DNA from: Kudoa neothunni
Taxonomy: Eukaryota > Animalia > Cnidaria
NCBI GenBank assembly: GCA_964304625.1
Contig: OZ199839.1
Span: 10,465,186-10,529,185, forward strand
Length of the DNA: 64,000 bases
Reading direction: 5' to 3'
Shown: piece by piece, positions 486 to 61,555 of the stretch
Layout: every line of letters starts with the position of its first letter
How positions within the stretch are numbered: the stretch's first letter is position 1
The notes under the pieces: model-generated
What the model was told of the DNA's origin: nothing
The model's database searches: none
The model's input: the letters and a program-made list of their open reading frames with translations, nothing else
Program-made: the position numbers and the translations under genes

Positions 486-543
486 ATGGATAAAATTATT
501 ATTTTTTTTACAATATTGATGTACAACGTGAAGAAAATTTCAC
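486..543 (+). other. Signal-peptide-like first coding exon (MDKIIIFFTILMYNVKKIS; MDKIIIFFTILIYSVKEIS in B and C)
   Basis: ATG, basic residue, hydrophobic core and a phase-1 GT donor; 58 nt in all three copies (18369-18426, 49423-49480). Confidence 0.7.
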
Positions 544-3500
544 GTAAATAAAATCAAACAATTTATCAATAATATGGATATACTTCTCAATAATTTTTAT
601 AAATTCTTACTATTTCGTTAGTTGATCCAACAAAATCTTGTGATCTTACTGCAAAATACAAATATGGTCTGGATATAATTGAATTAAGTTTGATACTACC
701 TGCACCTAAAGAAACGATCGAAGCAAGTTGGCAACTTAGTCACAGTGTTACTGGAAGAGTAGTCAAATATTCCAGAAATAGTTCATTAGGATGTGTATCA
801 AAATACTGCAAAATTCTCATGTTTGATGTGGATCGAACACAACCTTATTTTTTCAATATTACAACCAACAAATGTGAAAATATCCCATCCTTAAAAATTG
901 ACAGCGGTAATTATACACACTCTCTTATTAAAACGCAATTCGTTAAAATTACTTAAAGATCCAATGGATATTGACATAGTATATCGTCGAATAACACCAG
1001 CAGACGTAATGTTCGAAAATGAATTATTTTCTTTTAAAAATTTCCATTGCCAACTTTTCAAAATTGATTCATTATACGATTCGAAGAAACTTATTGGAGA
1101 GAATGACTTTGTGGACATTCAAGGAAAAGAAGGAGAGTGCGAAAAAATGATCATAGGACTAAACGAGGGGAAGCTTTATAAATATGCTCTTCGTATAAAA
1201 AATATATCAAATAAAGTTATAGTGAACATCAAAAGTATGTTACTTTTATATATTTTAATATATAAAAGATTTTAAACATAAAAGACAGAATTTTGTTTAA
1301 TGTGCATATTTTATATAGTTTTTTTTCATAATTAATTGTCACGTCGATTACATGTATATGCCATGGGTATTTACTCAATGTGTACCATCTACATTTGTGA
1401 AAAGAGCAAGTTTTAAACAAATATTATTTTAATTTCTATGTTTAAATCGACACAATTAATTTAAAAAAAGAGTAAATAAAATATTTTGATATAATTACAT
1501 TTATAATAAAACTGAAATCATTTAATTATAGAAATAATCAGTTTCATTGCATTTTATATAATGAAAAACAAAATAGATTGTATTAATTTTGTGTTCTATA
1601 TTTAGTTAAAATTAAAAGTACGGATTGAGAATTATGTTAAATTTATTAAAAATTATAACTTAATTATAAATTCAAAATTTTAATATAATCAAAGGGAATG
1701 TGTTATAATTGATATTTAGTAATAAAGATTTAAATTAATATTTGATTAATTAGGTCAGAAGTTCATGATATTGGATTATTAGATGACGCTTTATAGTATA
1801 AAGAATCGCCAAACGTTAGAAATAAGAATTTGTAAATAATTTTAGTATGGTCCAAATTTTCAAATAATAATAGAAATAATTATTAAAAAAATTTTTAAAA
1901 ATAAGCACATCAACATTTAACAGCTGGTAATTATACCACTACGAAATATGTAGGGCAAAGGTGTATTAATTTGGACAATAAAAATGAATCGTAGCAAGTT
2001 ATCATCGAGGTATATAGTTATTGTTATTTTTGGATCTCTCTAAAATTATCGGAATTTCAACTGCGATTATCATAGTCGTTAAAAGGATATTTAAAAGAAA
2101 AGTTTAATTTAGTTCTTACAAGTTGATTGAAAAAATCAATATATTTTTTACACTCTAAAAATGTTTTTCTACGATAAGATATTCTCAGTTCCGTGCGATG
2201 CTGGACAATTCGCGCTAATTGAAACAACAATAAACATCTCTCTGCGGCTAACGTTTGTATAGAAAATTTCTGAAATAATTATACATGTATAAGTTAATAT
2301 TTTACAAATATTTTTCGAATTTATAGAAATAATTTTAGTTTTGAATTTATAGATCATTTAATTTTAACAAAAATCACTCCAATGTAACGATCTCCCAGCA
2401 AATATTAAACCTATTTTTTTACTAAGGCAACATTATTTTCATGTAATAAATATACCATGGTGTAGGCTTAATTTACAAAAATCTACTAATAATATTGCAA
2501 AATACACAAATATTGTAAAATTAAACTTAACATTATTTTATACAATATTTTAATAGAAAATTTTAGATGAATTTTCTCTAGATTTTTCAGTCGTAATATC
2601 ACAATTTTAACATAAATGACTTACTAACAATTGTGCACTTGCTTTTGGGGAAAAAATTTTTAATTTGTTTAGTTTCCTATAATAAATGCTGGAATGTTTA
2701 TTTTTTTTATTTTTTTATAGAGGAACATCCAATGAAAAACTTTATAGAGAATGGTGGATTTGTTTTCTATGTAGCTTCAATTGATGTCGAGAATTCACAA
2801 TACAGCCTCTCATTCTTTCTAATCCATCGATATACCTTCTCATATCCTATTTTCATAAGACAGTGTAAGGAAGCAACTGGTAGTGATTTAGGTTTTAGAC
2901 TTCCAAATAAATCAGAAATGTTTTTTATTGTTAAATTTAATGAACAAAAATATGAACCACAACAATTTTTCATTGGTAAATCCCCCTCATAAATTACGAA
3001 AAATCAATTTTCATTTATTTAGAATTATCATCCGATGATTTTTCAAAATTTGAAACATTAGATCATGTTATTATTAAGTTGATTAAAAACGATAAAGCCG
3101 AGGAAATAAGTTATACCGTTGAGGAAAATGAGAATAAAAAGATTATCAATGTATTCAAATGTCACAATATGGATCGATCCGGTTGTATTGGTTATAAAAA
3201 CGATGATGGATCATACCTTTTTGAAAAAAATCTCAAAAAATCATATAAAATACACATTCAAACAACTGAACCAAAAGAACATTCGTTTCAGATTCATTGG
3301 AGTAAGATATCAATATTATAAACAATAACTGTTAACTTTTCAAATGAATCAACACTCTAAGTATTGTAACTTATTTTATCGATATTATTAAATTATCTGA
3401 AATATAAGTATTTTCCCTTTTATATGACCCAATATCTTTGTTGTTTAACTGATTGGTGATTTGAAATAATGTAAATTAAATGTAAAGATTGTACCTTTAT

Positions 3501-6500
3501 TGAGTTAAAGTGTTACATTCAAAATCGATTTAAAAAGTTTTTAAATCACATTACAAAATGATGTTCTATACAAGATAAATTGATTAAATACGAACATGAA
3601 ATTATTATTATTAAGTTATCCAGATATAGTAAAATTGAAATTTTTGATAAAAATCTACAAATATGATAAAATTATTTTATTATTTTTTTATATGAGTCAT
3701 TATTTTGTTATACCATGAATCTTTAAAGAAAACCTAAATTTGGACATTATACATTTTAGCTAATGAAAGCAACCCAATATTATATGGGAAAATATATGAT
3801 TAGAAACGTACAATTTTAAAAATATTTGAAATTTTAATTAACATACAATAGGTAACCGATGTTTCGTAATTACTTCAGGACCGTCCAAAAAATGCGAAAA
3901 ATCGCTTACATACTCTAATTTAAAAATTAAATTGGCGCATCTATTGATATAGATTTGCATAATCGCTATTTCACACTGTTGATTGACATCAGATCTAAAA
4001 TCCTCCCATCTATCTCCACTTTGAAATAATTTTTTAAAATTAACATTTTCTAATTTTTATCACTTTAATATCAAACTTTTGATAAATTTAAATTTTAGAT
4101 CCTCACAATATTACTTTCCATCATTACATTGAGTCTGACATTTTACATATTTGGTCTAATATAAAAGATGAGTGGGGACTGTTGTGTGATTATTATATGA
4201 TCAGAATGAATGAGGTCGGCGAAGAATATAATAATGCGGCTACATACAACGCTTACGATGGAACAAACAAAAATAATTTCAAATCATGCTCAAAGCACTC
4301 TATACCAATTACAAATGTTGTTCCACACACATTATTCATTTGGATTCCTGAATTAAACTATATAGATCAAATTAGAAATTGTATTTATTATTTGAAGGTC
4401 ACCATATTTAAAAAATGACTAATAAATTTCCTAGTGTATGAAGAATCTCAAATTATTATTGAAAGCAACACGAACACCTTTAATTTAAAATCAAAAGACG
4501 GATTTCTGACCGATAAGATGTGTAATTTTAAAATTAATGATCAAGAGTCAACTGTATTTGGACAATGCGAAAAAACACAAATTCCAAACCCTGCAGAAAG
4601 TGACAGCTGGACAGTTAATATTCATATTCTAGATTCGGAAATATATTTGGTGAAGAACGTAATACTTGGTAACTATATTATTAAATTTTATTAAAGTACA
4701 ACATTTTTAGAACAATCTAATGAAAACATTAATGTTAATACCAACCATGAAATGATGCAACTAACTCTTACAGAAACAATAAATCAACAGGATATATCAA
4801 AAATTGAAATTAACAAAATTAGAAATCAAAAAATTGGTGGATTAATTTTTGGTTATAACAAAAATGGAAATGATAACAAAATAACTTTAATACCGGATTC
4901 AAATATTCTCTCTATACCATATGTATTTGATCCTCATATTTTTATAAAAATCAAAAAATCTGATGAAACCGTAATTTCGAAAGTGATAAATATTGGTATT
5001 TTACATTATATAAATATATTCTTTTATGGTGATTAATAGGTTTCCCTAAACAGTCCTACAAGTTTTCATATGAATCAAATGATGTCAGCGTTATACCAGA
5101 AAGAAAATATACAGATGGAAAAGTTTGTAGATTTAGTGTAAAAACTGCAAATATTGATAAGTTGTCAAATGCAAAAGTATATTACGGTGATTGTTCTAGA
5201 AGTATTCAGTTTCGTGACCTGAAAAAAAACAGTCATTTAACTGTTACACACGATGGCCAAACATTGTACAATGGGTCTTTTTATGTTGGTAGAAATCTGA
5301 TCGAAGGAATACACTACGAATTAGGAATGATTAAAATTATGCACAACCTGGATGTAATCAATGAAAATAATTGCCAATATTCTTTTTCGTCCAAAAATTC
5401 CGACGAAAAAGATTTTAGCGTTTCAGCCAGTTGCAATGGAAACAATTCAGATTGTACATCAACCATAAAGAATAATGGACCATCATTTGATATCGAAAGA
5501 AACAAACATTACAAATACGATTTGACTTGCGGTGAATATACGGATAGCATTGAATACGGCCCCAGTAATATGTTCTATTAAAGAATGAAATATTCTGAAA
5601 TGTTTTTTAGTCCCAATATCTTCTGTTTGGAGATATACGTGGGATGGTACTATTTTAACCTTTTACAGCTCACTTGAAGAGATTGGCTCATCAGATGTCA
5701 AGTGCACCTACGAATTGTTTGCGTTCAATTACAACAACAACAACAAAAATAAAATCGCAAGTGAAGATTCTATAAAATGTGATAAAATTTCGTATAATAC
5801 CTCAGAAATTCCAAATATAAATGAAGTTAATGAAATAATCCTGGAGGTAAAAATTGTTGGAAATCAAAACACTGACTCCTACAAAATAAGTATATACATT
5901 TATGACTCATTGATGAATTGTAGAATTTAGACGAACTTAATTTTTATTAAATGATATATTTTACATAGGACGTGGTGATATCAACAATTTTCACGTTGTA
6001 GAGGGTGAATATGCTAGGAATAGAATAAAGAATCTGTTCAAAAGTTCTTATCAAAAAGATGAAATAGCGGATGCATGGTATTCAAGCAGGATTAATGAGG
6101 GAATCGTAGAGTGGTATTTTAACAGATCAAAGGATTACGATGTTCAGTCTGATGAAAATAATCAAATCATACTGTATCATAAAAATTATTTGGTCCATAT
6201 TTCGTCCATTGAAACTTTTACATATCCACATTACATGAAATTCTATTATCCTGAAAAAGAGAACGTGATTTAAAATATATTCAATTAAAATATAACTAAA
6301 ATATGATGTAGGAAAATGTTATCCACAAGCAAGTTAAAGATGGATTAAACTCAAAAATCACACATTATTTTCAAAAGGGCGACCTCACCAAAGAAAGAAT
6401 TCAAATCGAGACTTATCAGAATTATACATTTATTCCCTCGGCCCATGTTACAGTTGGCTCTAATTGTGATCATGAAAAATGCGAAGATTCATCCTGGGAA

Positions 6501-9500
6501 GCATTAGAACATGTCATAAAGCCAGACGAAGTGGTGAAAATTTGTTTTGTTAAAGACGGCAATGCTCTATATTGTAAAATATTTCAATCAGGTATTTGAA
6601 AAGTTTCGAAATTTTTTTATCTATTTGTTTGATTGGGTACATTTAAATTGAGTACTTTTTTTGTAATATGTCAATTATAGTTATCAATAATTGAAAAAAA
6701 ATAGTCGAGTAATTTTAATAGCATAAATTTATATGATCCAACATTAAACTTCTTAAACCAGGTTCTTCAATATATTCAAATAATATTATTTTTTATATTC
6801 GTCTAATAATATATTTTAGTAAAATTAATTATATTTAGATCTTCAATTCAACAAAATGAGATTATTATCCTACACGATCGATGACGTATCGATTGAAGTA
6901 TCAATTGATCCAAATATTGAACTGAAATGCACTTACATGTTCCAACTCAAAAATAAAATATACGAGCAAGTCTCTTGTTCTTGTGATAACAAATCAGCTC
7001 TTACCATTACTTGTTCCACCTATAATGTGGTTATATCCAATTCACAAGATAACAATTATTACTATGCTGAAATCCATAATAAAGAAGAAGTAATCGGCCC
7101 ATCGAGACTTCCATTCAGTAAAAAACTAGGTTAGTAAATATTTCATCATTATAAAAAATTTTTATATTACATAATAGCTATAAAGAAAAAAATTGATTAC
7201 CTCACTGTTGGTAATAGTGATAAATCGTTAGTTTTGAAAAATGCTAACAAATATTGCTACTTGGAAGGAAATTTAGAGGATGATACAATAAATTTTAACA
7301 AAAATACATGTTTTGAAATTAGCAAAGAAAGGTGCTCGGGCGATTCTAATTGTGATTATATTTCAGTAAATGTTTCCGAAAATGACGATATAATTTCTGT
7401 CGGTGACAAGTCAATCAGTAATGCAATGTTTAGAGATTGTAACCATAATATGTGAAAATTTGTTCAATAATTATTATTTGTAGCGGTTTCCAAAACAACT
7501 GAAACTGAACCTATTCTATTATACACTAGAACTATCTATTTTGATCATGCGTTATATTTGACTGGTGTGAGCATAAATAACACTCCAGACCAATTTACTA
7601 AGACAATTTTAATAACGGTTCCAACCAACGAAAACAAACTTGCCGAAACAAGTGTGGAAATCAACATAAAATGTGTTGACTACTTTTGTGTTGGAGGACG
7701 TAGCGACATTGATAGGTATCACCAAAAAGATATAATAGTTTCCTTAGAAAATAAACGAATTACAACAAGAACCGGAATATGTAATTATTTTTTGTTTTTA
7801 TTTCATAAATTAGTGAAATAGGTGAATTTAAGTACGATGTTCGGATATTCTTCGATAATAATTCTGTATCTTATACTTTCATTCTTGACGTCAATGTGGA
7901 CAACCTCAAAATAAAAATATCTTATATTACAGAAAATTTCGTTACGTGTTCTGCTGGTTTATTTAATGAGCTGCAATGCGATAAGGGAATTTGCAAATTG
8001 AGAGAAGAGATTCCGAAAAATTGTGGTCGATTTAAGTATGCTGATATATACGTGAATAACTTCGAAATTCCGCGCCGAGTTTCTGCAGGTAAATTATTTA
8101 TCTACCTATGGGCTTTAATAATATAAATAAATGTGATAATTTCTATCTTAAAGGAATTAATGTAAAAAAATTATAAAAAAATAAATACTTATTATAATGC
8201 GTCATATTTCATGCCCGAAAATGAAAAATAACATAGGTAACTGGTTTCGCGCACTATTTTAGTAAGCAAGAAATAAGTGCGTCCAAATGGTCACACCCGG
8301 TTCTGCACACTCGTTATACGCACGAAGAATATTGGAAAATTTACTTTCTATTGACATGTATTCATTAAAAAATGTTTTCTTATAATTCAATAATTAAAGA
8401 TAAATATATTATTTTATAAATGTAAACAATAATAAATTTATACGAGAAAAATATTTTGTTATTTTAGTTGGTTTCATATGTTTGAAAGAATCCTGAATAT
8501 CGACTCTTCTGTTGTCCTCAAATAATATTATTATTATTGTCATGCATCTTAAAAAATAATTTTAACCCTTCTAAATATTCTAAAGTCCCTTTAACCTGAT
8601 AATTTTTTTGCTGAGGAATTCACCTTCACTGAGTGTAACACAACATCAATATAAATCTTAATGATTTAACTGAAAATAAAAATATCGAATATTTAGCTAG
8701 TGTCTAGTATTTGATCATTTCGGTCATGTCGTTAGTAATCGAATTATCAGCAACTTTTTCATCATTAACAACTAATAAATTATCCTGCGTTGGGTCAGGT
8801 CTTAGAGAGGAAATTCTACTTGTTTAGACACTTTGTAACTGTATATTTAGAAACTTTCCTCAAGTTTTTTAATTAAACACATTGTTTCTTAAACGTTCGG
8901 AGGAGTTAGATCTATTCACATTTCAGCACAAGAAATGAAACTGTCATTGACTTATTGCGGAATAATTTGAGGAAATGGATGATCCCCTGGTCCAACGACT
9001 GAAAACCGCTAATAGTGTTCTTAGGGGAAATGCTAATTTAACGTTCGAAAAATCTTTTCGTTATTTAATAAAATTATCGTTAATTTTTTAAATGTCTCCT
9101 AAGATAACATCCTTAACCATGTAATCCTTTTTGTAAGATTCGAATAAAAGCGCTCTTCTTAATATTTTTTAAGAAACGTACTTTATTATTGGGCCAAATT
9201 AACAATAGATCCAGCTGTTCTCAAATTAAAAACTCTCCTTATAAAATAAAAAAATTTTGGATTTTTTAATCCTTGTTGTATTGTTTTCGGGTAAAGAAAC
9301 AAACTACAAAGGTTGACGGACGACATGTAATACTTTGAATTCTGGGAAAAATGCGAATTAGATAAAAATGCGTTAAAATTCTTGTATTTATTGTATTTTT
9401 GTCAGAAAATTGTTTTGAAGGCGTAAAAACTCAATTGAATTAATTTTATAAACTTGGGCTTATGTAATGCGCTCGACAAGCAGTAAATTCTGTATGAAGT

Positions 9501-12500
9501 AGCAAGGTGCGTATTAGCAATAATCCGTTGTATTATCTTAAAAATTACCATAAAATAGAATTATCAATATTTGCTACAATAATTTCGATAGAGCTAACCC
9601 ACTTCATCAATAATCTAAATATATCCTCCGAATATCTCCCACAAGGCGTTCTAATTTTAGATATCCATTCATCAGTAATTTTGAGACAGGCATCGCCAGA
9701 TTAGTCATAAAAACTGACTTATTTAATATTTTATCTTGTTTAAGAGAAACTATCCAGGGGTTGCAATTGATGCCGATTTCTTACGTTGAGCAAACTCACT
9801 TCTTTATAAATAAGGATCGTAATTTTTGATTATAATCGATTTTAGTCGTCGATTTTTTGAAGGTAAACGTCAAAACTACGATCCTTATTTATAAATAATA
9901 TTCGCGGCACTCAGTTAGATCTTTTTGTTGCTTGTTTGACAGATTCATTCGCATACATCTTTAATGAGATTATTATATACCTCAGTATTAAAATATTTCT
10001 TTTTTTATAGTATAAATCATCTTCATAAATTTGAAATAATTTTCTCTCAGCCTTAACTCTTTAAAGTCGTAAATGAAGATAAATTAACATTCTTGGTGGT
10101 AACGGCTTTCGCACCTTTGGGTGGAAGACTATCATAATATTTTTTATCATTTTTCTGTTATAATTTTGATTCTTACTACCATTCCAATTATTGAAACAGA
10201 CAACAACGAAATTATTAACAAATTCAGTTCTAATGAAGTTCCTGAACTGACAATCATGTGGCATACTTATGTTATTTAACACCTTTATAATTTTAATTTT
10301 TAATATAAACCGATAAAGCTGACTTAAAAGGACGTTATTAAATGAACATTTCGCCGTTTAGCCGAAATAAGTATCATTAAGAAATGCTTGACAACAATTA
10401 CCTACTGCAGACATGAAAATCGATTAATATTCTATATGTTAACAAACTCTAAGATCAAGTTTATCAACCTTCCAGTATAAACCAATAATACTTTTATCAA
10501 ATAATGGTTTAAATTATTTTCTTTAATTTAAAATAAAAATTTTTTATGTATATATATATATAGGTCAAAGAAAAGAAACATTGGTGGATTATTCGCCAGA
10601 CAGCGGAAACTTGAAAATAAAACTTAGGCTGTTAGAGAAAGCTAGCTCTGATATATCAAATACATATATAGTTAAACAAGGAGTTGAAGCTGAACAGAAA
10701 ACACAATTAGGCCTAGATGATTGCAATGAGGGAGTTTGTACCATCACATTAACCGGCATTGACCCCAAAAAGGAGTTTGCGATTAGACGTGAATATGAAT
10801 CCCCATATAAATATGGATATTACTTACTGATAAGTAAGATATGAATTTTTTAAATCTTTGTTATTTTTCGACTATAGAAAATTACTCCTATGATTATGAA
10901 TATTCTAATGAAGGAAATAACATGAAAATAATGCTTATAATTAAGGAGAACGTCGATCCAATTATTATCAGTGGTTATAAAATTTTTTGCACGAGTATGA
11001 AAAACATTTTAAAATCGAGTGATGTCTCCGAACAAATTAGTTGTCAAGATAATAAATGTGAATTAGTCATCAATGATATTACTCTTACAGAAGATTGTTA
11101 TATTAGTATTTCATCTGAAATGCTTATTCCCCGAGATTTATCACTCAAAGGACGTAAGAATTATTGCGAGAAATATTCGAAAGTTATTAATTAAATTAAT
11201 TTAGCTTCTAGTCTGCTTAATGTCATGTCATCCACAAAAAATGTGGAAGAATTTACCGTTAGTTACAATTTGAAATTGAGAAAACATCTTACCAAGCTAT
11301 CATTTGAAATGAAATATACATCAAAAACTGACGACATCGCAGCTATTACAAAAAGTGGGGAAATGTCTTGTGAAAAGGGAATATGCAATATAAACATTAA
11401 ATTGAACGATTATTATTATCCTGGTACATTAACCTTATCATCGAAAATGCTCTCCGATTCTTACTCACATGATTTTTCTCCGCGTAAATCAAAATAACTG
11501 TGTATATATTGTTTCATATTCAAATTTTTAGCAAAGACAACATGTGAAATTAATCATGACATTAATGGATCAAAATTAACTATCACTTTTACACTTGAAA
11601 AACCATATAATTTGTTTCCGGCTAACGTGGAAGCCTCTTGCAGTGTCGATAAACGCTACAACGAATTTAATAATAAGAATATTCCAGTGGAAATAATCAA
11701 ATGCGATAACAAAAGATGTGAAACTACGTTTGCTTATGATTACTCAAAAGATTGTATTATTAGAGTGAACTCAGTAATATTTTCCAAAGAAAAATCTATC
11801 CAGATTGATAAAGGTAGATGTTTTTTAAGCTATAATCATTAAACTTTTTTAATAATAATTTTACAATAATTGAATATGTTAATGTATTTAGGAATATACC
11901 CTTATGATATTGCATATATTGAAGAAGGAAAAAACTTAAAGATTATGTTCATAATGGATAGAGAATTTGATAAAATTAATCTTGATAGTTACAAATTAAC
12001 GAAAGAAGATAATTCAACCATGATATCTTCCAGTGAATCCGCCAAAGAAATTACATGTGATAAAAATATTTGTGAGTTTACGATAAACAATGGCATTGCC
12101 GAGGATGACAGCTACCTTACATTTACTTCAAATATACTCATTCAAAAAACATTCAAAATATCTGGATGTATATATATTTATAATTGTTTGTTTCAAACGA
12201 AAACCATTTTAATCCTTAAATTAATTTAGCATCAAAAAAATTGGAAGTTATCTCGTTTTCTGGAGTAACTGATGGATTAGTTGTTAAGCTTAGTTGGAAA
12301 TTACGAAAGTACGTTCCATCGATACAATTAGGTATAGAATACCAAGTAAACAACATCAAAGAAAATTCTAACCTCGTTGAACCTAAAAATGAAGTTAACT
12401 GCAAAGAGGGTGTATGCACCATTGAATTTCCAATGAATGATTATTATTATCCGATAACAATATCTGTAACATCCGAAAAATTTTCTGTAGCCTATTCCCA

Positions 12501-15270
12501 TACATACACCCCACGTAATATAATATATTAATAATTAATCTTGAACTATATTTTTTTTAATTTTTAGCATTAAGTACGTATAAAGTCGATTTCAGATTTG
12601 GTTCGGAATCATTAAATTTAAATTTTGTTCTTGAACAACCCTACCGAAAATTTCCAGTTGACTTAAAAATGACATGCAGTGACGATAAAAGTGTTAAAGA
12701 ATTCAGTGCTAAAGAAGATATTAAAAATTTAGTTACATGTGAAGAAAATAAATGCACAACCAAAATTGATTATGACATCAAAAAAGATTGTATTGTAACA
12801 GTCAATTCTGATATATTTTCGGAGGAAAAATCAATAGAGATTGACAAAGGTAAAATTCTGTAAATAATTGATGGACTTAAATTAATTTTATAGTGAGATC
12901 AAAATTCAAATTTGATAATTATTTCCTGGACGGAGAATTAGTTTTAGAAATCACATTAGTAGAGAATTATAGTCAAATTCGTTTGAATTGGACATTAGCA
13001 GATGGAAATCTCCAACCTGAGAAGAAATCAAATGGGTTTGAAACGGTCGAGTGTTCCAATAAGCTATGCAAAATTTCATTTGGTCAACGCAATACGAAAA
13101 CATTTTACACATTATTTTATGATTCTGCTTACCTTGAACAACAACCAAAATTGGATTTTGATATAAGTTTGTCTTAATAATATATATATTTTTAAATTTA
13201 TTTTATGATAGAATTGAGATGGACTGAAATATTTAATAATGTAAGCATTTTCACTAAAAACAAATTAAAATTGTTGGATGAAGATAAAAAAATAGTAATA
13301 TTACCCTGTTGAAAATTATATTCTATAAATAGTTTTAGTCTGTTACCGATATTAGCACCGCATGGAGTGACATTTTGAAGGGTGAATAATTTATATATTC
13401 TATATATATCGTGATCGAAAAAATATATTTGAATCTAGATGGAAGTAGTGATGCAAAAGAAGAAACAACACCTGAACCAGAAAAAGAGAATACCCAAGAA
13501 ACTACTCCAGAGATAGTCGAAAACAAAGAGGAGTATTTTTCTGCTAGTTAATACTACATAATTATGGAATTTTAGGAAATTTTTACAGGCTGTTAACATT
13601 CTTGATGACATCATATTAAATATGAACCAAACCGACGAAGTTTCTAATGATCATTTTAAGTTTAAAGCATTTGATGTAGCAGATGATTCTAATGTGATTC
13701 AATATACTACTAAGTATTTATATTATGATATGTACATCACTAATAACTAAAAATAGGAGCGAAAATGTCACCACCACAAACAATTCTGAAACTACCATGT
13801 CAATTCAAATAGACACACTGGATAGTAAAAATACTGATGCTCCCATTGTTGAAAATCAAGTGGCATTGGCTATCACTAAAGCCCAATCTGTGGTATCTCA
13901 GTCAAAAGATAATGTGATGGTAGCTGGTGATATTATCGTCTTGAAAATTAAAAATCAAGAAAATAAAAAGATTAACTTTACATTCAGCCAGATCATTAAT
14001 AATGCTGACGATGTCATATACACCAAATGTTGCACATTAAACAGTATATTAAAAATTCTCAAATTATTTTATGAGATATTAAGCTACATGTTAACAAAAT
14101 GTAATCAATTCTTTAGGAAATACACTCAAATGGGAACAAGTATATTGCTCTCCGCTTAGTAGGGAAATACTGCCCGAAAATCGAATAAATGTCACATGCT
14201 CATGTAATCACACTACAAGCTATGCTGTGGTGTTTGATTTCAGAGAGAGGGACGACGCTACATCATCTGACGCTAACAAGTATCGTCAAACTGAAATTTC
14301 CCTTAGTTTAACAGTAATATCGTTGGTCTTTTTATTTCTAACACTGATTTGTCTAATCACCTCAGAGTAATCATGATTACCTATTATGCTCAGCGTTCTT
14401 AATTCATATTTTATTTTTAGAACAAGAAGAACTATGCGTGTTAAAGCGCAAATTGGATTGTGCATTTCGTTGTTTTTCTTACAAGCGTTCTATGTTTCTA
14501 TTAATATCTTTAAAAATAAGCCAAAAGTCTGCTTCGCCTTGGCGGTCAGCATTCATGTAATGTTGCAAACGGTGTATTATTCTTTCTTGCTCAACACCTA
14601 TTTATTGTTCCACACGTTGATTTTTACCATGAAGAAAATTTCTGGTCCTGTCTTCAAACTATGTTTAGCTTTATCATGGGGTAATATAGATACACCTTGA
14701 TGTTTCATATAAAACTTGTTTGTAGCTATTCCTGGAGTGATTACATCCCTGTGTGTTGTGTTTATGAGGAACAATTACGCGAAGAATTCAAAGTAACACT
14801 CTGCCATCAAACCCTACTTATTCATTAATTTTTTTAGTTGTGTAGTAACTGGCAGTACAAGTCTTTACACAACAACAATACCTAGCGGTGTTGTCGTTTC
14901 GTTTAGTGTCTTCGTTTGTATTTGCGTAATCTGCAATTTGAGACGAGCAGAAAAGAAAAGAGGTAAAAGTGGATCAACCCTGTCCAAGGCCAAACAGATT
15001 TTCTTCTTAGCGATTCTTTTGGGTTTGCCATTGATATTCCAATATTTAATCTTCATTGATGATGGTGGAAAAGGAGAGTTGGTTTTCGTTATAACCAATT
15101 GTTCTCAAGGAATATTCTTTTTCTTGATTATTGTGTTGTCCAATTCTACAATGAGAACCCACGCTCTTTCATCAGTCGGATTGATGAGTAGTTCAGCCTC
15201 GAAACCATCTTATATGATGCAATCGAAATCTAAAAGCATGACCCAAACCTCAAATCTTATTAAACACTAG
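486..15270 (+). CDS. Giant adhesion-type GPCR, copy A (signal peptide + ~24 extracellular modules + GAIN/GPS + 7TM), 33 exons, ~2757 aa
   Basis: Manually spliced exons: 486-543, 622-906, 959-1234, 2721-2975, 3023-3301, 4099-4380, 4435-4668, 4711-4995, 5040-5564, 5611-5889, 5969-6264, 6312-6591, 6839-7129, 7178-7438, 7484-7780, 7822-8088, 10564-10833, 10878-11153, 11205-11483, 11532-11813, 11892-12167, 12230-12514, 12568-12849, 12894-13166, 13212-13240, 13339-13381, 13439-13532, 13576-13713, 13757-14043, 14117-14366, 14421-14680, 14726-14792, 14838-15270. All introns are GT-AG with consistent phases; total 8274 nt = 2757 aa + TAG. Starts MDKIIIFFTILMYNVKKIS; GPS KWEQVYC...VTCSCNHTTSYAVVF; seven hydrophobic helices incl. 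SWAIP (TM4), LLGLPLIF (TM6), NCSQGIFFF (TM7). Confidence 0.9.
8900..9060 (-). mobile_element. Decayed pogo/Tigger-like transposase fragment in copy A intron 16 (element boundaries unclear)
   Basis: Minus strand reads PKNTISGFQSLDQGIIHFLK, resembling the pogo DDE_1 motif PPNTTS.LQPLDQGII..FK. Confidence 0.65.
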
Positions 15271-17025: not shown

Positions 17026-18368
17026 TACATATTTCGTTTTTTTGGCTATCATTTCATGGGGTTGAATTTTGATTCGAAGAAGTTGCATTTAGGCCTTGAA
17101 ATACTGTACATAGTAGATTTCTTCTTTTATTCGGCTGGCTATTTTATATCTGATTATCGCATTTCGAATTATTCTAGTTGGTTTCGCTTTTTACTTAGAG
17201 TTAGTAATATCATTTAAAATGAATATTTTATATCAATGTTTAATAATTTTTCTAATCCTAAAATATTATGATCTCCAATATAATTTCAATTATCTTAATA
17301 GCAAACATTGAACTAAGGATAAATTCACTGTAATGTTCTACAGAGGTTGGCATGTTGTTTTGTATAGACTAATACATTTTATAAGCGCTTTGGATAGGGG
17401 TTAAATTTATCATTGGATATTTCTTGTAGTTTCGCATTGTGACTAAATTTAGCATTACTAGTAGTTGCAATGTTATCCTGTATATACTTATTGACATAAA
17501 AAATCTTTTTTAACAGAAAATAAATGGTAATGTTTCACATAAGTGACATTCATGCTAGGACGATAAATGATGACCTTTATCAATAAAGCCTATTATAAAA
17601 ATTTAACCACAAAATAAACGTAAAATTAAACTGTAAAGTTGTTTGTTTACAATCGTTGTTGCAAACCAACCACATTAACACAATATCACGGATTCTTAAT
17701 TAACGTATCGTATATATCCATACTTCTTGTTATATAAAAATCAACAAAACAAGATTTGAAAATCACTTATACATTAACTTAAATATGAGTTTATTAAAGA
17801 GAAATATTATACAATGTCTGCATATTTGGCCAATTTAGAGGTAAAATTTTAACTAATGTATTTTCTTTTGAAAATTAATTTAATAATAGTTCATTTATTG
17901 TTATATGTATTTATTAAATTAAAACTTTGATACAAATATTATTTTAGTAAATATTCTCATCCGTTGCAATAGCCACCACCCCAAAAAAATAAATTGTTTG
18001 TTTGCGCAAGAAAGTTACCTCCACGAGTAGTTAGGTGAAGTTCTTACGCTTGTTTACATGCAACTCTCAACTTTCTTGAGATTACAATAAGATTACGAAC
18101 AACCTGTCTTCTATTATACTTTTATTCGTATGAATGAGTAAGTGCTACATGTCATTCATATATCTAAATTATTGAATATGACCTAACTAAAGCATATTAA
18201 AGAATTATCTTCATTTATGTTATTCATATGATTAATTTTACGTATTATACAATAACAAAGTGAATTACTAAATTACTTTATTATCTTAATGTTGAAACAA
18301 TAGACACTTAACATTATCGGTGAAATTAATCGAACTACGTTTAAAGTATCCATTGATAGTGAGAAATC

Positions 18369-30300: not shown

Positions 30301-33300
30301 ATTTGGCAAGTTACAAAATTAATTGTTTATTTTTTTGGTTATATTTTAAGTATTTTTATCAAAAAATGTTAGTTATAATGTTTTTATTTTAAAATAAATA
30401 ACCGCGTAATTATAAAGGAATAATTCATTTATGTTCAACTTAACAAACCCTTAAAATCAAATAATTCGATATTAGAAATAAATGATATTTTTTGCATTCA
30501 TTTGGAAACTTAGTATAGTAAAAATAATTATATTTAGAACTTCAATTCAACAAAATGAAATTATTATCTTACACAATCGATGAAGTTTCCATAGAAGTAT
30601 CAATTGATCCGAATATTAAATTGAAATGCGTTTACATGTTCCAACTAAAAAATACAATATATGAGAAAGTCTCATGTCGTTGTGATAATGAATCAAAGAT
30701 TATTATTACTTGTTCCACTTATAATGTGGCTATATCTAATTCACAAGATGGCAATTATTACTATGCTGAAATCTATAACAAAGAAGAAATATTAGGTCCA
30801 GCAAGGCTTCCATTTAGTAAAAAACTAGGTTAGTCAATATTATGTCAGTATAAAAATTTTATAATAAATATTAGCCATAAAGAAAAATATTGATTACCTT
30901 ACAGTTGGTAATAATGATAAAGCGTTAATTTTAAAAAATGAAGATAATTATTGCTACTTTACTAGAAATTTAGAAGGTGGAACTATAAATTTTACGAAAA
31001 ATATATGTTTTGAAACTAGTGGAACAAAATGTTCCAACGATTCTGGTTGTAATCCAGTTTCAGTAAATAATTCCGAAATTGGCAATATAGTTTCTATCGG
31101 TAACAATCTATCCAATATTGCAATATTTGGTGAAAGTAATTATATTATATGAAAATTTATTCAATAATTTTTATTTGTAGCGGTTTTCACCGAAAATACA
31201 GTCGAACCTAATCTATTATACGCAAGAACTATCTATTTAGATCATGTGTTATATTTGACAGGCATTCAAATAAGTACCACTCCAAACCAATTGACTAAGA
31301 CGGTTGTAATAACAGCTCCAAACAATAAAAACCAACCTACTGAATCAAGTGCTGAAATCAACCTAAAATGTGTTGACTACTTTTGCGTTGGAGTAGTTAG
31401 TGACATCGATAGGTATCAACAAAATGAAGTAAAAGTTTCCTTAGAAAATAGACAAATTTCGACCAAACCCGAAATATGTAACATCCGTCTGTTGTTTGTT
31501 CTATACATGAATGAAATAGGTGAGTTTAAATACGATGTTCGGGTATTCTTGCATGATAACTCTATATCATATACTTTTATTATTGACGTCGATGTAAAAA
31601 AAATCAAAGTCAAAATATCTTATATCAAAGAAGATTTCACTGTATGTTCTGCCGGCCAATTTAAAGAATTAATTTGCACAATGGGAATTTGTAAGCTGAA
31701 TGAGCAAATTCCTACAGGTTGTAGTTCATTTAACTATGCCGATATATACTTGAATAATTTTGAAACTCCGCGTCGAGTTTCTAAAGGTAAATTATTTATC
31801 TATCTAAGGAATTTAATATTATTGGTAAATAAGATAATTTCTGCCCTATTTTAAATTTCCTTATTTAATATCCTAAAAAGAAAAATGACACTATTTTTTT
31901 TCTCAAAAATTGAATAGCAAATTTCCTTTCCTAATATTATAAATTAAATCTACCCCTAATGTTACTACTAAATGAATAAAAATTTGAATATAAAAAACCA
32001 TATAAAATTCTTGGTTTGAATCCACGCATTGATTAATTATACGAACCAATTTTTGTCTTATAAAAAACAACGTTTAATGTATTCCAATGAATTGTTCATA
32101 TTATTAAAATATTTTTCCTTTCCGTCTAGTTTAAAGTATAGTTGCATTAAGTGAATTTCAGCATAATTAGAACACGGATTTATCGATTTTCAGGCGCTCT
32201 AATTTTCTGGGATGAATGCTCAAAATATTACGAGCAACAAATCTGACACATTACTTAATAAGACTATCAATTACGACAGGTTGGACGATACATTTCTATT
32301 ATTTACTGGTCAGACAATGTATTGGATTATCCTTAATCTTGCAGGATACTTTAGAAATAATTTTATTATTAGATAGCTCTCTTTGAGTCTAAAATAATTA
32401 GACGGGTCAATTATATCTATGAAAGTTTTTAAGGATGGCAGAGTATCAATATCCCAATTGTTTGCAATTTTTGAGAATTATAGGATTTGATTAAAGTAAA
32501 ACATTGCTATTAATTTAGATCAGGGGTCTCCAAAGTGGTCGATACGTGTTATAGAGATTCCATTGACTTTTATGGACCTTGAAGATAATGTTTCCCATCT
32601 TCCTACTACATTATTGAATTATATTAATTAATACTATCCCATGAGATTTTTTTTTATTTGTAAGTTAAAATCAAACGTCATATTTCCTAATTATGTAATT
32701 CATTGTTTTTCATTTATGTAGAGATACTTTGCAACTCATAAAAACTAGTGAATACATTGGCTTTATTTTTCTTAAATATTAATGTTCATCGATACTCGTT
32801 GTTATTAGCAATTTATATAACAATAATGATTGTTTATATTAAGTTTATAATCGACTAAGAAGGATAAGTCTAATTTTTAAAATTGATTTGAATCGTAATC
32901 ACAAAAACTTCGAAAATAAACATAATAATAATAAATCGGAAAATGTCGTTTGAACCGCTTTTGACACTTCAAAAACTCTTTAAGCTCCCTCAAGCTAAGG
33001 AACATAATCTTAGGGTAAAGATTAATTTATTCTTATTAACTTTCAGAGATAGCTAGGAATAAATATTAACTTTTCTACATATATGTAATTTAATCATAAA
33101 ATCTGCTGATGTATTCATACATGTGCAAAAGTATGTAACTATAAACATATACAAGCAACCTAACGTTTTAGGTCAATTGAATATGATTTATGACGAAAAA
33201 TGGATTCAATATCGTAAATTTTCTAATATAGTTGTTTTTAGCAATGACCTGATTATAAATATCTGCGTAAATCTACAAATTTCAAGAATTTTTCTGATAT

Positions 33301-36300: not shown

Positions 36301-39300
36301 CAAGTATTAAATCGAGCGAGGTCCCCCAACATATTCAATGCCAACAAAATATATGTAAATTGAGAATTGACAGTGTCACACTTGAAAAAGATGTTTATAT
36401 AAGCATTTCATCGGAAATGCTTACACCACGAGATTTATTACTCAAAGGACGTAAGAATTATTGCGAGAAATCTTCAAACGTTTCTAAATAAATTATTTTA
36501 GCTTCTAGCCTACTTAATGTCATGTCTTCCACAAAAAATGTGGAAGAATTTACCGTTAGTTACAATTTGAAATTGAGAAAACATCTTACCAACCTTCCAA
36601 TAAAAATAAAGTACACATCAGAAAATGGCGTCATTGCGGAAGTTACGAAAGTCGAGGATATATCTTGTAACAAGGGAATGTGCAATATAAACATTAAATT
36701 GAACGATTATTATTATCCTGGTACATTGTCCTTATCATCAGAAAAACTTCTTGATTCTTACTCACATGATGTTTCCCCTCGTATATCAAAATAACTATTT
36801 ATATTCTTGTTTCATGTTGAAATTTTTAGCAAAGACAACATGTGACATTAAACATGACATTAATGAATCAAAATTAACTCTCACTTTTACTATTAATAAG
36901 CCCTATAATTCATTCCCAGCTAATTTGAGAATTTCTTGCAGTGACGATAAACGATATATTAAATTCGATGATAAGGATATTCTGGGGAAAACGATTTCGT
37001 GCAATAACATGGTCTGCGTCGATACATTCAATTACGATTACACAAAAGATTGTAATGTTACAGTGAATTCAATAATATTTTCAGAAGATAAATCAATCCA
37101 GATTGATAAAGGTAGATGTTTTTTTTAAGTTATAATCATTAAACTTCCTTAATAATAATTTTACAATAATTGCATATGTTAATGCATTTAGGAATATACC
37201 CTTATGATATTGAATATGTTGAAGAAGGAAATAACCTAAAAATTATGTTCATAATGGATAGGGATTTTGACAGAATTAAACTTAATAGTTACAAATTGAC
37301 GAAAGAAGATAATTCAACTAAAATATCTTTCAGCGAATCTTCTCAAGATATTAGTTGTAATAACAATATTTGTGAGTTTACGATAAACAGTGGCATTGCC
37401 GAGGATGACAGCTATCTTACATTTACTTCAGATATGCTCATTCAAAAAACATTCAAAATATCTGGATGTATATATATATATATATATTTATTTATTTCAA
37501 AAAATTTTTATTTTAATGCATAAATTAATTTAGCATCAAAAAAATTGGAAGTTATCTCGTTTTCTGGAGAAATTGCCGGATTAGTTGTTAGACTTAGTTG
37601 GAAATTACGAAAATACGTTCCATCGATACAATTAGGTATAGAATACCAAGGAGAAAATGTTCCGGAAGGATCTAATCTCGTTAACTCTGAAATGGTAGTT
37701 AATTGCGAAAAGGGTGTATGCTCAATTGAATTCCCCATGAATGATTATTATTATCCAGTAACAATATCTGTAACATCTGAAAAATTTTCTGTAGCCTACT
37801 CTCATAAATATACCCCACGTAATATAATCAATTATTAATTAAATTTCGAATAATATATTTATTTTTAGCAATAAGTACGTATAAAGTCGATTACAGATTT
37901 GGTTCGGAATCATTAAATTTAAATTTTGTTCTTGAACAACCCTACCGAAAATTTCCAGTTGACTTAACAATGGCATGCAGTGACGATAAAAGTGTTAAAG
38001 AAAACACCGTGGAAAAAAATATTCAAAATATAGTCACATGTGCAGACGATAAATGCACCACCAATATTGATTATGACATCAAGAAAGATTGTATTGTAAC
38101 AATCAATTCTGATATATTTTCGGAGGAAAAATCAATAGATATTGACAAAGGTAAAATTCTGTAAATAATTGATGGACTTAAATTAATTTTATAGTGAGAT
38201 CAAAATTCAAATTTGATAATTATTTCCTGGACGGAGAATTAGTTTTAGAAATCACATTAGTAGAGAATTATAGTCAAATTCGTTTGAATTGGACATTAGC
38301 AGATGGAAATCTCCAACCTGAGAAGAAATCAAATGGGTTTGAAACGGTCGAGTGTTCCAATAAGCTATGCAAAATTTCATTTGGTCAACGCAATACGAAA
38401 ACATTTTACACATTATTTTATGATTCTGCTTACCTTGAACAACAACCAAAATTGGATTTTGATATAAGTTTGTCTAAATAATATATATATTTTTAAATTT
38501 ATTTTATGATAGAATTGAGATGGACTGAAATATTTAATAATGTAAGCATTTTCACTAAAAACAAATTAAAATTATTGGATGAAGATAAAAAAATAGTAAT
38601 ATTACCCTGTTGAAAATTATATTCTATAAATAGTTTTAGTCTGTTACCGATATTAGCACCGCATGGAGTGACATTTTGAAGGGTGAATAATTTATATATT
38701 CTATATATATCGTGATCGAAAAAATATATTTGAATCTAGATGGAAGTAGTGATGCAAAAGAAGAAACAACACCTGAACCAGAAAAAGAGAATACCCAAGA
38801 AACTACTCCAGAGATAGTCGAAAACAAAGAGGAGTATTTTTCTGCTAGTTAATACTACATAATTATGGAATTTTAGGAAATTTTTACAGGCTGTTAACAT
38901 TCTTGATGACATCATATTAAATATGAACCAAACCGACGAAGTTTCTAATGATCATTTTAAGTTTAAAGCATTTGATGTAGCAGATGATTCTAATGTGATT
39001 CAATATACTACTAAGTATTTATATTATGATATGTACATCACTAATAACTAAAAATAGGAGCGAAAATGTCACCACCACAAACAATTCTGAAACTACCATG
39101 TCAATTCAAATAGACACACTGGATAGTAAAAATACTGATGCTCCCATTGTTGAAAATCAAGTGGCATTGGCTATCACTAAAGCCCAATCTGTGGTATCTC
39201 AGTCAAAAGATAATGTGATGGTAGCTGGTGATATTATCGTCTTGAAAATTAAAAATCAAGAAAATAAAAAGATTAACTTTACATTCAGCCAGATCATTAA

Positions 39301-40571
39301 TAATGCTGACGATGTCATATACACCAAATGTTGCACATTAAACAGTATATTAAAAATTCTCAAATTATTTTATGAGATATTAAGCTACATGTTAACAAAA
39401 TGTAATCAATTCTTTAGGAAATACACTCAAATGGGAACAAGTATATTGCTCTCCGCTTAGTAGGGAAATACTGCCCGAAAATCGAATAAATGTCACATGC
39501 TCATGTAATCACACTACAAGCTATGCTGTGGTGTTTGATTTCAGAGAGAGGGACGACGCTACATCATCTGACGCTAACAAGTATCGTCAAACTGAAATTT
39601 CCCTTAGTTTAACAGTAATATCGTTGGTCTTTTTATTTCTAACACTGATTTGTCTAATCACCTCAGAGTAATCATGATTACCTATTATGCTCAGCGTTCT
39701 TAATTCATATTTTGTTTTTAGAACAAGAAGAACTATGCGTGTTAAAGCGCAAATTGGATTGTGCATTTCGTTGTTTTTCTTACAAGCGTTCTATGTTTCT
39801 ATTAATATCTTTAAAAATAAGCCAAAAGTCTGCTTCGCCTTGGCGGTCAGCATTCATGTAATGTTGCAAACGGTGTATTATTCCTTCCTGCTCAACACCT
39901 ATTTATTGTTCCACACGTTGATTTTTACCATGAAGAAAATTCCTGGTCCTGTCTTCAAACTATGTTTAGCTTTATCATGGGGTAATATAGATACACCTTG
40001 ATTTTTCATATAAAACTTGTTTGTAGCTATTCCTGGAGTGATTACATCCCTGTGTGTTGTGTTTATGAGGAACAATTACGCGAAGAATTCAAAGTAACAC
40101 TCTGCCATCAAACCCTACTTATTCATTAATTTTTTTAGTTGTGTAGTAACTGGCAGTACAAGTCTTTACACAACAACAATACCTAGCGGTGTTGTCGTTT
40201 CGTTTAGTGTCTTCGTTTGTATTTGCGTAATCTGCAATTTGAGACGAGCAGAAAAGAAAAGAGGTAAAAGTGGATCAACCCTGTCCAAGGCCAAACAGAT
40301 TTTCTTCTTAGCGATTCTTTTGGGTTTGCCATTGATATTCCAATATTTAATCTTCATTGATGATGGTGGAAAAGGAGAGTTGGTTTTCGTTATAACCAAT
40401 TGTTCTCAAGGAATATTCTTTTTCTTGATTATTGTGTTGTCCAATTCTACAATGAGAACCCACGCTCTTTCATCAGTCGGATTGATGAGTAGTTCAGCCT
40501 CGAAACCATCTTATATGATGCAATCGAAATCTAAAAGCATGACCCAAACCTCAAATCTTATTAAACACTAG
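18369..40571 (+). CDS. Giant adhesion-type GPCR, copy B, 33 exons, ~2753 aa
   Basis: Exons 18369-18426, 18505-18789, 18842-19117, 23508-23762, 23811-24089, 27810-28091, 28146-28379, 28425-28706, 28754-29278, 29325-29600, 29680-29972, 30019-30298, 30538-30828, 30875-31135, 31181-31477, 31520-31786, 35865-36134, 36178-36450, 36502-36780, 36830-37111, 37192-37467, 37534-37818, 37869-38150; exons 24-33 = copy A coordinates +25301. Same intron positions and phases; exon length differences are multiples of 3; no frameshift seen. Confidence 0.9.
19531..21407 (-). mobile_element. pogo/Tigger-family DNA transposon, decayed, in copy B intron 3
   Basis: ~27 bp TIRs (cagtgggtgacgggttgttcgtaattt / aaattacgaactacacgtcacccacta) flanked by TA. 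Frameshifted transposase fragments: KLYGEADSV, YIIDETALFYQLL, LLSDNASS, KNTISLFQPMYQDKIYSFK. Confidence 0.9.
21825..23265 (-). mobile_element. Second pogo/Tigger-like remnant in copy B intron 3 (ends approximate)
   Basis: Minus strand fragments KLKLHGERERADF and DPEYILNFDETAHFY; degenerate inverted ends sharing ttgcgtaa/ttacgcaa. Confidence 0.65.
25188..26122 (+). mobile_element. Internally deleted pogo-like element (nested)
   Basis: Inverted ends gtaagtaaccaatttcacgc / gcgaaattggtttattac; fragment FIYDVDETATFYR near 25835-25875. Confidence 0.65.
26440..26570 (+). mobile_element. MULE (Mutator-like) transposase fragment
   Basis: Reads ...ESASFLTCRFHLSQIFLREI, resembling the MULE CxFHLxQ motif. 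Confidence 0.5.
32521..33497. mobile_element. Non-autonomous hAT-type element in copy B intron 16
   Basis: caggggtctccaaa ... tttgaagacttctg termini; 8-bp TSD atttagat/attcagat (1 mismatch); same insertion in copy C. Confidence 0.8.
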
Positions 40572-60817: not shown

Positions 60818-61555
60818 GTAAATTATTTATCTATCTAAGGAATTTAATATTATTGGTAAATAAGAGAATTTCTGCCTTATTTTAAATTTCCTTATTTAAT
60901 ATCCTAAAAAGAAAAATGACACTATTTTTTTTTCTCAAAAATTGAATAGCAAATTTCCTTTCCTAATATTATAAATTAAATCTACCCCTAATGTTACTAC
61001 TAAATGAATAAAAATTTGAATATAAAAAACCATATAAAATTCTTGGTTTGAATCTACGCATTGATTAATTATATGAACCAATTTCCGTCTTATAAAAAAG
61101 GAACATTTGATGTATTCCAATGAATTGTTCATATTATTAAAATATTTCTTCTTTCCGTCTAATTTAAGATACAGTTGCATTAAGTGAATTTCAGCATAAT
61201 TAGAACACGGATTTATCGATTTTCAGACGCCCTAATATTCTAGGATGAGTGCTCAAAATATTATGAGCAACAAATATGGCACATTTACTTAATAAGACTA
61301 TCAATTACAACAGGTTGGACAATACGTTTGTATTATTTTCCGGCCAGACGATGTATGGGATTATCCTTAAAGCTTGCAGGGCACATTAGAAATAATTTTA
61401 TTATTAAATAGCTCTCTTTGAGTCAAAAATAATTAGACGGGTGAATTATACCTATGAAAGTTTTTAAGGATGGCAGAGTATCAATATCCGAATTGTTTGC
61501 AATTATTGAGAATCATAGGATTCGATTAAAGTAAAAAAATGTTATTGATTCAGAT

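Follow-up and report, generated by a model that had tools for sequence, protein, structure and literature searches.

A giant gene, which probably encodes an adhesion G-protein-coupled receptor (adhesion GPCR), was found in a 64,000-nt stretch of Kudoa neothunni DNA (assembly GCA_964304625.1, contig OZ199839.1, positions 10,465,186 to 10,529,185 of the forward strand). This whole stretch is referred to as the window, and positions are counted from its first nucleotide. The gene occupies positions 486-15270 of the + strand and is most plausibly read as one intact unit, in which about 24 FN3/Ig-like domains precede a GAIN/GPS region and a secretin-type seven-transmembrane (7TM) domain. Judged from their sequences, the first module, one middle module and the eight membrane-proximal modules appear to form a single lineage-specific family with a C-x4-C cysteine pair. 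For the other middle modules, the best explanation is that they are of older origin, have become different from one position to the next, and retain their order throughout the gene family.

Receptor class

Downstream of position 13166, a GPS and a secretin-type 7TM domain mark the encoded protein, of roughly 2,800 residues, as a predicted adhesion GPCR. The GPS reaches 25.9 bits against a Pfam cut-off of 22.5 (PF01825), and the last exon alone reaches 22.2 bits against the cut-off of 20.6 for 7tm_2 (PF00002). The GPS sequence TCSCNHTTSYAVVF was aligned with that of latrophilin-3 (ADGRL3), TCSCNHLTNFAVLM, and TCSCNHTT/SYAVVF is placed opposite TCSCNHLT/NFAVLM. Among PDB sequences, those closest to the last 7TM exon are ADGRE5, ADGRF1 and ADGRD1, all with weak similarity (E 2e-3 to 0.3). 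Three features of a class-B2 adhesion GPCR are found together in this gene: a 7tm_2 domain, a GPS located just before the first transmembrane segment, and a long N-terminus that starts with a signal peptide and consists of repeats. An earlier note on this DNA, made from the sequence alone, had described a modular ectodomain of about 2200 residues; the two Pfam matches support this description and place it in an adhesion GPCR.

Between the last module and the GAIN-like region lies an acidic low-complexity stretch rich in Thr, Pro and Glu (DAKEETTPEPEKENTQETTPEIVENKEE, positions ~13423-13547), a possible mucin-like linker.

Gene structure

The window is AT-rich (GC ~28%). On the + strand, open stretches of about 90 codons follow one another, with the reading frame shifting from each to the next. 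GT..AG sites that preserve phase-1 reading were located for every one of these stretches, the sole exception being the pair 5969-6264/6312-6591. In total, 23 ectodomain exons are encoded within 622-13166 (individual lengths in Table 1), and 21 of them have phase-1 boundaries on both sides and a length divisible by 3. The two exons that deviate from this 1-1 symmetry are the members of the exceptional pair, which are split by a phase-0 intron of 47 nt. All 23 introns have GT..AG borders, and the remaining 22 are in phase 1. Most are short (19 of 23 measure 41-79 nt), and the four longer ones span 247, 797, 1486 and 2475 nt. Intron 16, the longest, is occupied by a dispersed genomic repeat, and a similar origin is probable for the remaining long introns (1235-2720 and 3302-4098, as well as the larger introns of the second gene copy described below). 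The exon coordinates, lengths and phases given in the earlier note were reproduced by this splice-site analysis.

Spliced together, the signal-peptide exon and the 23 ectodomain exons yield a frame of 6,661 nt (2,220 codons) in which no stop occurs. Since stop triplets occur about once per 14 codons in the local DNA, a stop-free frame of this length is far beyond chance. The joined model was translated only for stop counting; all searches and fold predictions were carried out exon by exon.

These data bear directly on a non-functional locus, in which repeat-derived open frames would form an array that is degenerating or was modelled wrongly. Such a locus could account for the 0 reads obtained from three RNA runs, for the large repeat-filled introns, and for one family member with stops in its 7TM exon. 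It does not fit the 2,220 stop-free codons or the consistent GT..AG introns. Moreover, the exons are intact in four gene copies, mostly with a ratio of nonsynonymous to synonymous substitution rates (dN/dS) below 1. This explanation is effectively refuted already and we consider it extremely improbable.

Predicted fold of the modules

For the canonical C-x4-C module, an AlphaFold2 model of 12232-12513 was computed with an alignment of 20 modules. It comprises seven strands (pLDDT 81.5, pTM 0.72). A Foldseek search with this model returned weak matches only (E ~4e-3), namely to FN3 domains, CBM56 and Ig-like sandwiches. In an exhaustive VIA search, the best match was the FN3 domain of the IL-4 receptor (Z 8.4, 85 residues, 2.3 Å), and dozens of further FN3 domains scored Z 6.6-7.3. 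FN3 domains of cytokine receptors and other proteins, at Z 8.4, 7.3 and 7.2, align over 85-90 residues at 2.3-3.1 Å. Bacterial Ig-like domains were retrieved by a shape search of the ESM-Atlas (TM 0.63-0.69), and a language-model feature search of the Atlas gave weak leads to fn3 and Ig_J clusters only. The canonical module is thus predicted to adopt the common seven-strand FN3/Ig-like beta-sandwich.

The middle modules were approached via a paralogous gene in which several modules share one intronless frame of 504 codons. The first 282 residues of this frame were modelled with AlphaFold2, using an alignment that included exons 3023 and 4099 (exons are named by their first nucleotide). In the model (pLDDT 77.7), three beta domains follow one another. 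Foldseek matched it best to FN3 domains 10-12 of fibronectin (E 2.8e-5, 312 columns), followed by IFNAR1 and other FN3 arrays, with 54 matches at E<=1e-3. VIA aligned FN3 pairs across residues 1-190 at Z 7.0-7.4, the third domain being less well covered. The junction of exons 3023 and 4099 coincides with the point at which the model passes from domain 1 to domain 2. According to this model, the divergent middle modules represented in it would thus be FN3-like as well.

For the modules modelled, the predictions agree with the Ig/FN3-like sandwich suggested in the earlier note. The alternative offered there, a new beta-sandwich, was not borne out, as the AlphaFold2 fold is an ordinary FN3/Ig-like one. 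The idea of a new fold was dropped for these modules in view of hundreds of beta-sandwich matches, of which FN3 domains are the best.

One repeated module or several types

A hidden Markov model (HMM) of the module was seeded on the last eight ectodomain exons, iterated over the window and then extended to 28 further genome loci (141 modules). Ten of the 23 exon products are recognised by it (E 1e-22 to 3e-12): exons 622 and 7822 and the run of eight that starts at 10564 and closes with 12894. Scores of the remaining 13 do not rise above those of shuffled sequences. Three of these 13 carry hints of a relationship: exon 5611 (HHalign probability 77%), and exons 7484 and 6312, which have a C-x4-C pair at a similar position. 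When profiles of the individual exons were compared with the family profile by HHalign, only exon 5611 was added, and an all-against-all HHalign comparison of the exon profiles revealed no relation among the non-canonical exons.

Several of the non-canonical exons are conserved by position. In most other genes of the family, exons 3023 and 4099 are clearly represented in unchanged order, as is exon 5040 with its first half. Exon 3023 has positional orthologues in 10 other loci (dN/dS 0.16-0.35) and is homologous to domain 1 of the three-domain model, which is FN3/Ig-like. Exon 4099 has orthologues in 13 loci (dN/dS 0.19-0.36) and shares 40% identity with domain 2. The non-canonical exons therefore seem, at the level of sequence, to be position-specific types conserved across paralogues. 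The claim of the earlier note that one module is repeated about 24 times is overstated, as only the 10-13 exon products of C-x4-C type form one sequence family; by HMM and HHalign, the rest are distinct types that are conserved by position.

The 525-nt exon 5040-5564 is best read as two modules that were probably merged through intron loss, because intronless multi-module frames are present in paralogues. In family genes elsewhere, stand-alone segments of 83-104 residues match only its first half. The paralogous 504-codon frame apparently comprises about five module lengths, within which exons 3023 and 4099, and exon 5040 for its first half, have clear counterparts.

The same data could also be taken to indicate a heterogeneous ectodomain. 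In that case, only the 10-13 C-x4-C modules would form a repeat stalk, and a distinct ligand-binding region of different folds would be encoded by the middle exons (959-7438), their module-like size being a coincidence. The 13 exon products that score like shuffled sequences against the family HMM and are mutually unrelated by HHalign would be expected under such an arrangement. It is also compatible with the conservation by position of the middle exons across distant family genes, and with the Atlas feature search for the 525-nt exon, in which nothing was found. However, the three middle-type modules that were modelled via the paralogue are all predicted as tandem FN3-like beta domains, exon sizes of 77-98 residues and phase-1 boundaries match those of the canonical modules, and the 3023/4099 exon boundary aligns with a domain boundary of the model. 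We regard a heterogeneous ectodomain as improbable, and a chain of about 24 FN3/Ig-like modules is preferred.

Sequence relatives of the module family

At E<=1, Pfam matched none of the 23 exon products, and even at E<=10 no fn3, Ig, cadherin, PKD or Calx-beta match was obtained for 20 family members. With a 20-module profile, nothing was found below E 0.2 among PDB sequences and only three marginal matches were found among 1.84 billion proteins, and a word-index search for relatives of the module found none. The "unrecognised" module of the earlier note is thus unrecognised in Pfam, among PDB sequences and, one metagenome fragment excepted, among the 1.84 billion proteins. As far as sequence comparison can tell, the family appears to be an orphan.

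The metagenome fragment is the first of the three marginal matches and represents a genuine module. It is an 82-residue open reading frame on an AT-rich metagenome contig of 1,154 bp (ENA ERZ4740346 NODE_3735). This contig bears tandem C-x4-C modules that are 45-47% identical to modules of other Kudoa family genes, and because of this identity it is likely to derive from another myxozoan. It comes from an unrelated public sample and is the only relative found outside the Kudoa genome.

The other two marginal matches were rejected. One is a bacterial protein with 12 fn3 repeats that matched over just 27 positions (library-wide E 2.4e-4), the other a spurious match to a repeat protein. Similarly, homology to FN3 domains was not supported by profile-profile comparison: HHalign of the 141-module profile with 11 true fn3 repeats of the bacterial protein gave a probability of 1.5%, although this template is of low diversity and the test a weak one.

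Paralogous genes and their evolution

The genome amounts to 40.26 Mb in 4 contigs. The window contains three tandem copies (genes 1 to 3), which start near 486, 18.4 kb and 49.4 kb, and a fourth close copy sits on contig C1. Across the genome, 7TM exons were detected at 15 loci (at one of these with stops) and the number of module matches is 93 or higher, which suggests a family of about 15 giant adhesion GPCR genes.

All 23 ectodomain exons have full-length, stop-free, one-to-one counterparts in genes 2 and 3 and in the C1 copy, and the number and order of modules in gene 2 are the same as in gene 1. Compared with the three paralogues, the exons are 51-100% identical, with pairwise dN/dS of 0.15-0.92. 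The lowest dN/dS values were obtained for exons 3023, 4099 and 6839 and the highest for exons 622, 4711, 5611 and 7178.

The copies resemble one another in patches. At the protein level, genes 1-3 are 100% identical in their last module and last 7TM exon (12894-15270 and 38203-40570 in the window, and C2:10534369-10534839), compared with 51-98% for the other ectodomain exons, which points to gene conversion restricted to the signalling end. Two exons further upstream are also close to gene 3, namely exon 11892 (98% identical, dS 0) and exon 959 (90% identical, dS 0). Gene conversion is therefore indicated, and the pattern points to a GAIN/7TM end that is kept identical by this process while the ectodomains diverge.

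A separate identical stretch is located in the 5' flanks. Positions 2-395 (gene 1) and 17899-18292 (gene 2) are 100% identical over ~390 nt, while the first exons share only ~80%. It forms a second homogenised tract, possibly the promoter.

Modules have also been duplicated within the gene. Exons 10878-11205-11532 are 33, 30 and 41% identical to exons 11892-12230-12568 over 90-94 residues, respectively, and represent an old in-frame duplication of a three-exon block. Thus, of the proposal that any module could be skipped, duplicated or swapped in frame, duplication did occur; skipping and swapping would keep the frame as a matter of arithmetic. Alternative splicing is unsupported, since module order is fixed in gene 2, the exons match one-to-one, and 0 RNA reads were obtained.

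The one-exon-one-module layout is not universal in the family. Multi-module intronless frames were observed in distant genes (504 codons at C2:11797178-11798689 and 390 codons at another locus), so the layout was lost repeatedly by intron loss. Closer to gene 1, the counterparts of exons 7484 and 7822 share a single open frame of 228 codons in gene 2 (31168-31851) and gene 3 (60199-60882). In gene 1, these two exons lie in different frames with a 41-nt intron between them, which genes 2 and 3 have either lost or keep in frame.

The divergence between copies raises the question of a diversifying surface repertoire. Here, the tandem copies would function in recognising the host or evading immunity, and their modules would be reshuffled by gene conversion, possibly also by in-frame exon skipping, in front of a constant signalling end. 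Ectodomain exons that are 51-85% identical between copies, several of them with dN/dS of 0.7-0.9, are in line with such a repertoire. So is the patchy identity described above, with exons 959 and 11892 resembling gene 3 and the 3' end identical throughout. Symmetric phase-1 exons would preserve the frame if skipped, and variable surface proteins have been proposed in a genome paper on another myxozoan. Yet dN/dS exceeds 1 in no exon, module order and number in gene 2 are identical and the exons of genes 2 and 3 and the C1 copy match one-to-one, and 4-15 genes would make a small repertoire. We therefore consider a diversifying repertoire unlikely.

A more specific variant, for which our expectation is likewise low, is that the trio and the C1 copy form a host-interaction repertoire, with a fast-diverging FN3-like ectodomain mounted on an invariant G-protein signalling module. 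Patchy gene conversion might then swap ectodomain segments, and exon skipping might add isoforms. If true, variant surface receptor families would have an analogue in a metazoan parasite, with an adhesion GPCR as its base.

Proposed working of the receptor

As an intact adhesion GPCR, the protein would carry its roughly 24 ectodomain sandwiches as a beads-on-a-string rod, with almost one domain per phase 1-1 exon. By analogy with the receptor class, this chain could hold binding surfaces far out from the membrane and act as an adhesive or force-bearing arm. In each C-x4-C module, the invariant cysteine pair may form a disulfide staple across a hairpin. Engagement of a ligand, or pulling on the chain, would be transmitted to the GAIN domain, where exposure of the TSYAVVF tethered peptide could activate the 7TM domain, as in other adhesion GPCRs.

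A number of observations weigh against this assignment and its details. Concerning the fold, fn3 in Pfam (PF00041) is unmatched even at E<=10, and HHalign to the real FN3 array stayed at 1.5%. Because Z values of 7-8 are common for any beta-sandwich, the FN3 likeness of the models would indicate a fold class, with homology not proven. The fold models cover the canonical module and three middle-type modules of the paralogue; ten other exon products (959, 2721, 4435, 4711, 5040, 5969, 6312, 6839, 7178 and 7484) have no profile similarity to the C-x4-C family or to each other. Concerning the signalling end, no Pfam match, GAIN included, was obtained for 13698-14156 or 13562-13747 at E<=1. Autoproteolysis at the GPS is uncertain, because Thr instead of Leu precedes the cleavage site. 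A role in adhesion or mechanosensing is suggested by the receptor class alone. Finally, three species-labelled RNA runs from 2026 gave 0 reads on 2650-8150, which is no test of expression; older runs contain DNA only.

Comparison with known receptors

Small beta-sandwich repeats in arrays are already known from other adhesion GPCRs, and the Kudoa gene represents an uncommon form within this familiar class of receptors, as opposed to a new kind of system. The giant adhesion GPCR ADGRV1 (VLGR1) has about 35 Calx-beta repeats followed by GAIN/GPS and a class-B2 7TM domain. Both receptors share a very long tandem array of small beta-sandwich repeats ahead of the GPS and 7TM domains. In contrast to ADGRV1, the Kudoa modules have no Calx-beta or other Pfam match and are predicted to be FN3-like with a C-x4-C pair. 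The Kudoa array also differs in mixing one repeat family with position-specific divergent modules. Its 7TM domain is only weakly similar to that of any solved adhesion GPCR.

The predicted seven-strand sandwich resembles the FN3 domains of fibronectin and cytokine receptors, and the three-module model aligns serially to FN3 10-12. The Kudoa modules differ from fibronectin FN3 arrays in lacking membership of fn3 at the sequence level. To our knowledge, a conserved C-x4-C pair is not a feature of FN3 domains.

In sponge adhesion GPCRs, fn3 and Ig are listed among the N-terminal domains, together with GPS and 7tm_2 (PMC4302439). Those fn3 and Ig domains are recognised by Pfam, whereas the Kudoa modules are not. 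The Kudoa genes further differ from the sponge genes in having about 24 modules each, nearly one per phase-1 exon, and in their expansion to about 15 members.

The new element is a lineage-specific family of FN3-like modules, orphan in databases and with a C-x4-C signature, that is arranged with almost every module on its own phase-1 exon and has expanded in a drastically reduced parasite genome. The published K. neothunni assembly comprises 40.2 Mb in three chromosomes and a circular mitochondrion, with a median intron of 49 bp, 30% GC and about 5,300 predicted genes (PMC12239612). That paper mentions neither GPCRs nor fibronectin-like domains, and a literature search found no paper describing these Kudoa receptors or the module family. 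Most animal genes have been lost in myxozoans; despite this loss, about 15 giant adhesion GPCRs, each with two dozen or more domains unrecognised by databases, have been retained in K. neothunni.

Kudoa is a parasite of fish muscle. The receptors are plausible mediators of contact between parasite and host, or between parasites, in commercially important fish. With an identical signalling end and divergent ectodomains, they offer a natural receptor set for adhesion GPCR research. Inclusion of the large orphan family in domain libraries could moreover allow a proper annotation of myxozoan proteomes.

Features of the locus

The features of gene 1 are listed in Table 1.

Table 1 Features of the predicted adhesion GPCR gene at 486-15270, in window coordinates
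Feature	Coordinates	Strand	Details
Exon 1: ATG and hydrophobic signal peptide MDKIIIFFTILMYNVKKIS	486..543	+	phase-1 donor gtaaat; stop-free from ATG
Canonical C-x4-C module exon (CVSKYC)	622..906	+	285 nt, phase 1-1; family HMM E 6.6e-19
Non-canonical module-sized exon	959..1234	+	276 nt, phase 1-1; orthologues 68-90% identical, three paralogues; no family HMM signal
Non-canonical module-sized exon	2721..2975	+	255 nt, phase 1-1; most divergent among paralogues (51-55% identity)
Position-specific module exon, C-x8-C pair	3023..3301	+	279 nt, phase 1-1; kept in most family genes
Position-specific module exon (IWSNI...AATYN...KSC...IWIPELNY)	4099..4380	+	282 nt, phase 1-1; kept in most family genes
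Non-canonical module-sized exon	4435..4668	+	234 nt, phase 1-1
Non-canonical module-sized exon without cysteine	4711..4995	+	285 nt, phase 1-1
Double-length exon, probably two fused modules	5040..5564	+	525 nt, phase 1-1
Borderline C-x4-C family member	5611..5889	+	279 nt, phase 1-1; HHalign probability 77%, E 2e-5, 71 columns in register
First exon of asymmetric pair	5969..6264	+	296 nt, phase 1 to phase 0; orthologues in paralogues
Second exon of asymmetric pair	6312..6591	+	280 nt, phase 0 to 1; CDHEKC near canonical motif position
Non-canonical but conserved module-sized exon	6839..7117	+	279 nt, phase 1-1; dN/dS 0.22-0.29
Non-canonical, fast-evolving module-sized exon	7178..7438	+	261 nt, phase 1-1
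Module exon, CVDYFC near canonical motif position	7484..7780	+	297 nt, phase 1-1; weak family signal
Canonical C-x4-C module (CDKGIC), divergent C-terminal third	7822..8088	+	267 nt, phase 1-1; HMM E 3e-12, positions 1-63
Intron 16, dispersed genomic repeat	8089..10563	.	2,475 nt; at least 60 partial copies, 67-88% identity, three chromosomes
Run of eight canonical C-x4-C module exons	10564..13166	+	all phase 1-1; family HMM E 1e-13 to 1e-22
Canonical exons 1-4 of the run	10564-10833, 10878-11153, 11205-11483, 11532-11813	+	270, 276, 279, 282 nt
Canonical exons 5-8 of the run	11892-12167, 12230-12514, 12568-12849, 12894-13166	+	276, 285, 282, 273 nt
Acidic Thr/Pro-rich linker, GAIN-like region, GPS motif	13167..14298	+	GPS TCSCNHT/TSYAVVF ~14197-14238; exon structure only partly resolved
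Seven-transmembrane domain and cytoplasmic tail	14299..15270	+	Pfam 7tm_2

About 95 kb before the window, on the - strand (C2:10369726-10370079), a further 7TM exon of the family is present. It is probably a pseudogene, because one TGA and one TAG fall inside the 7TM match.

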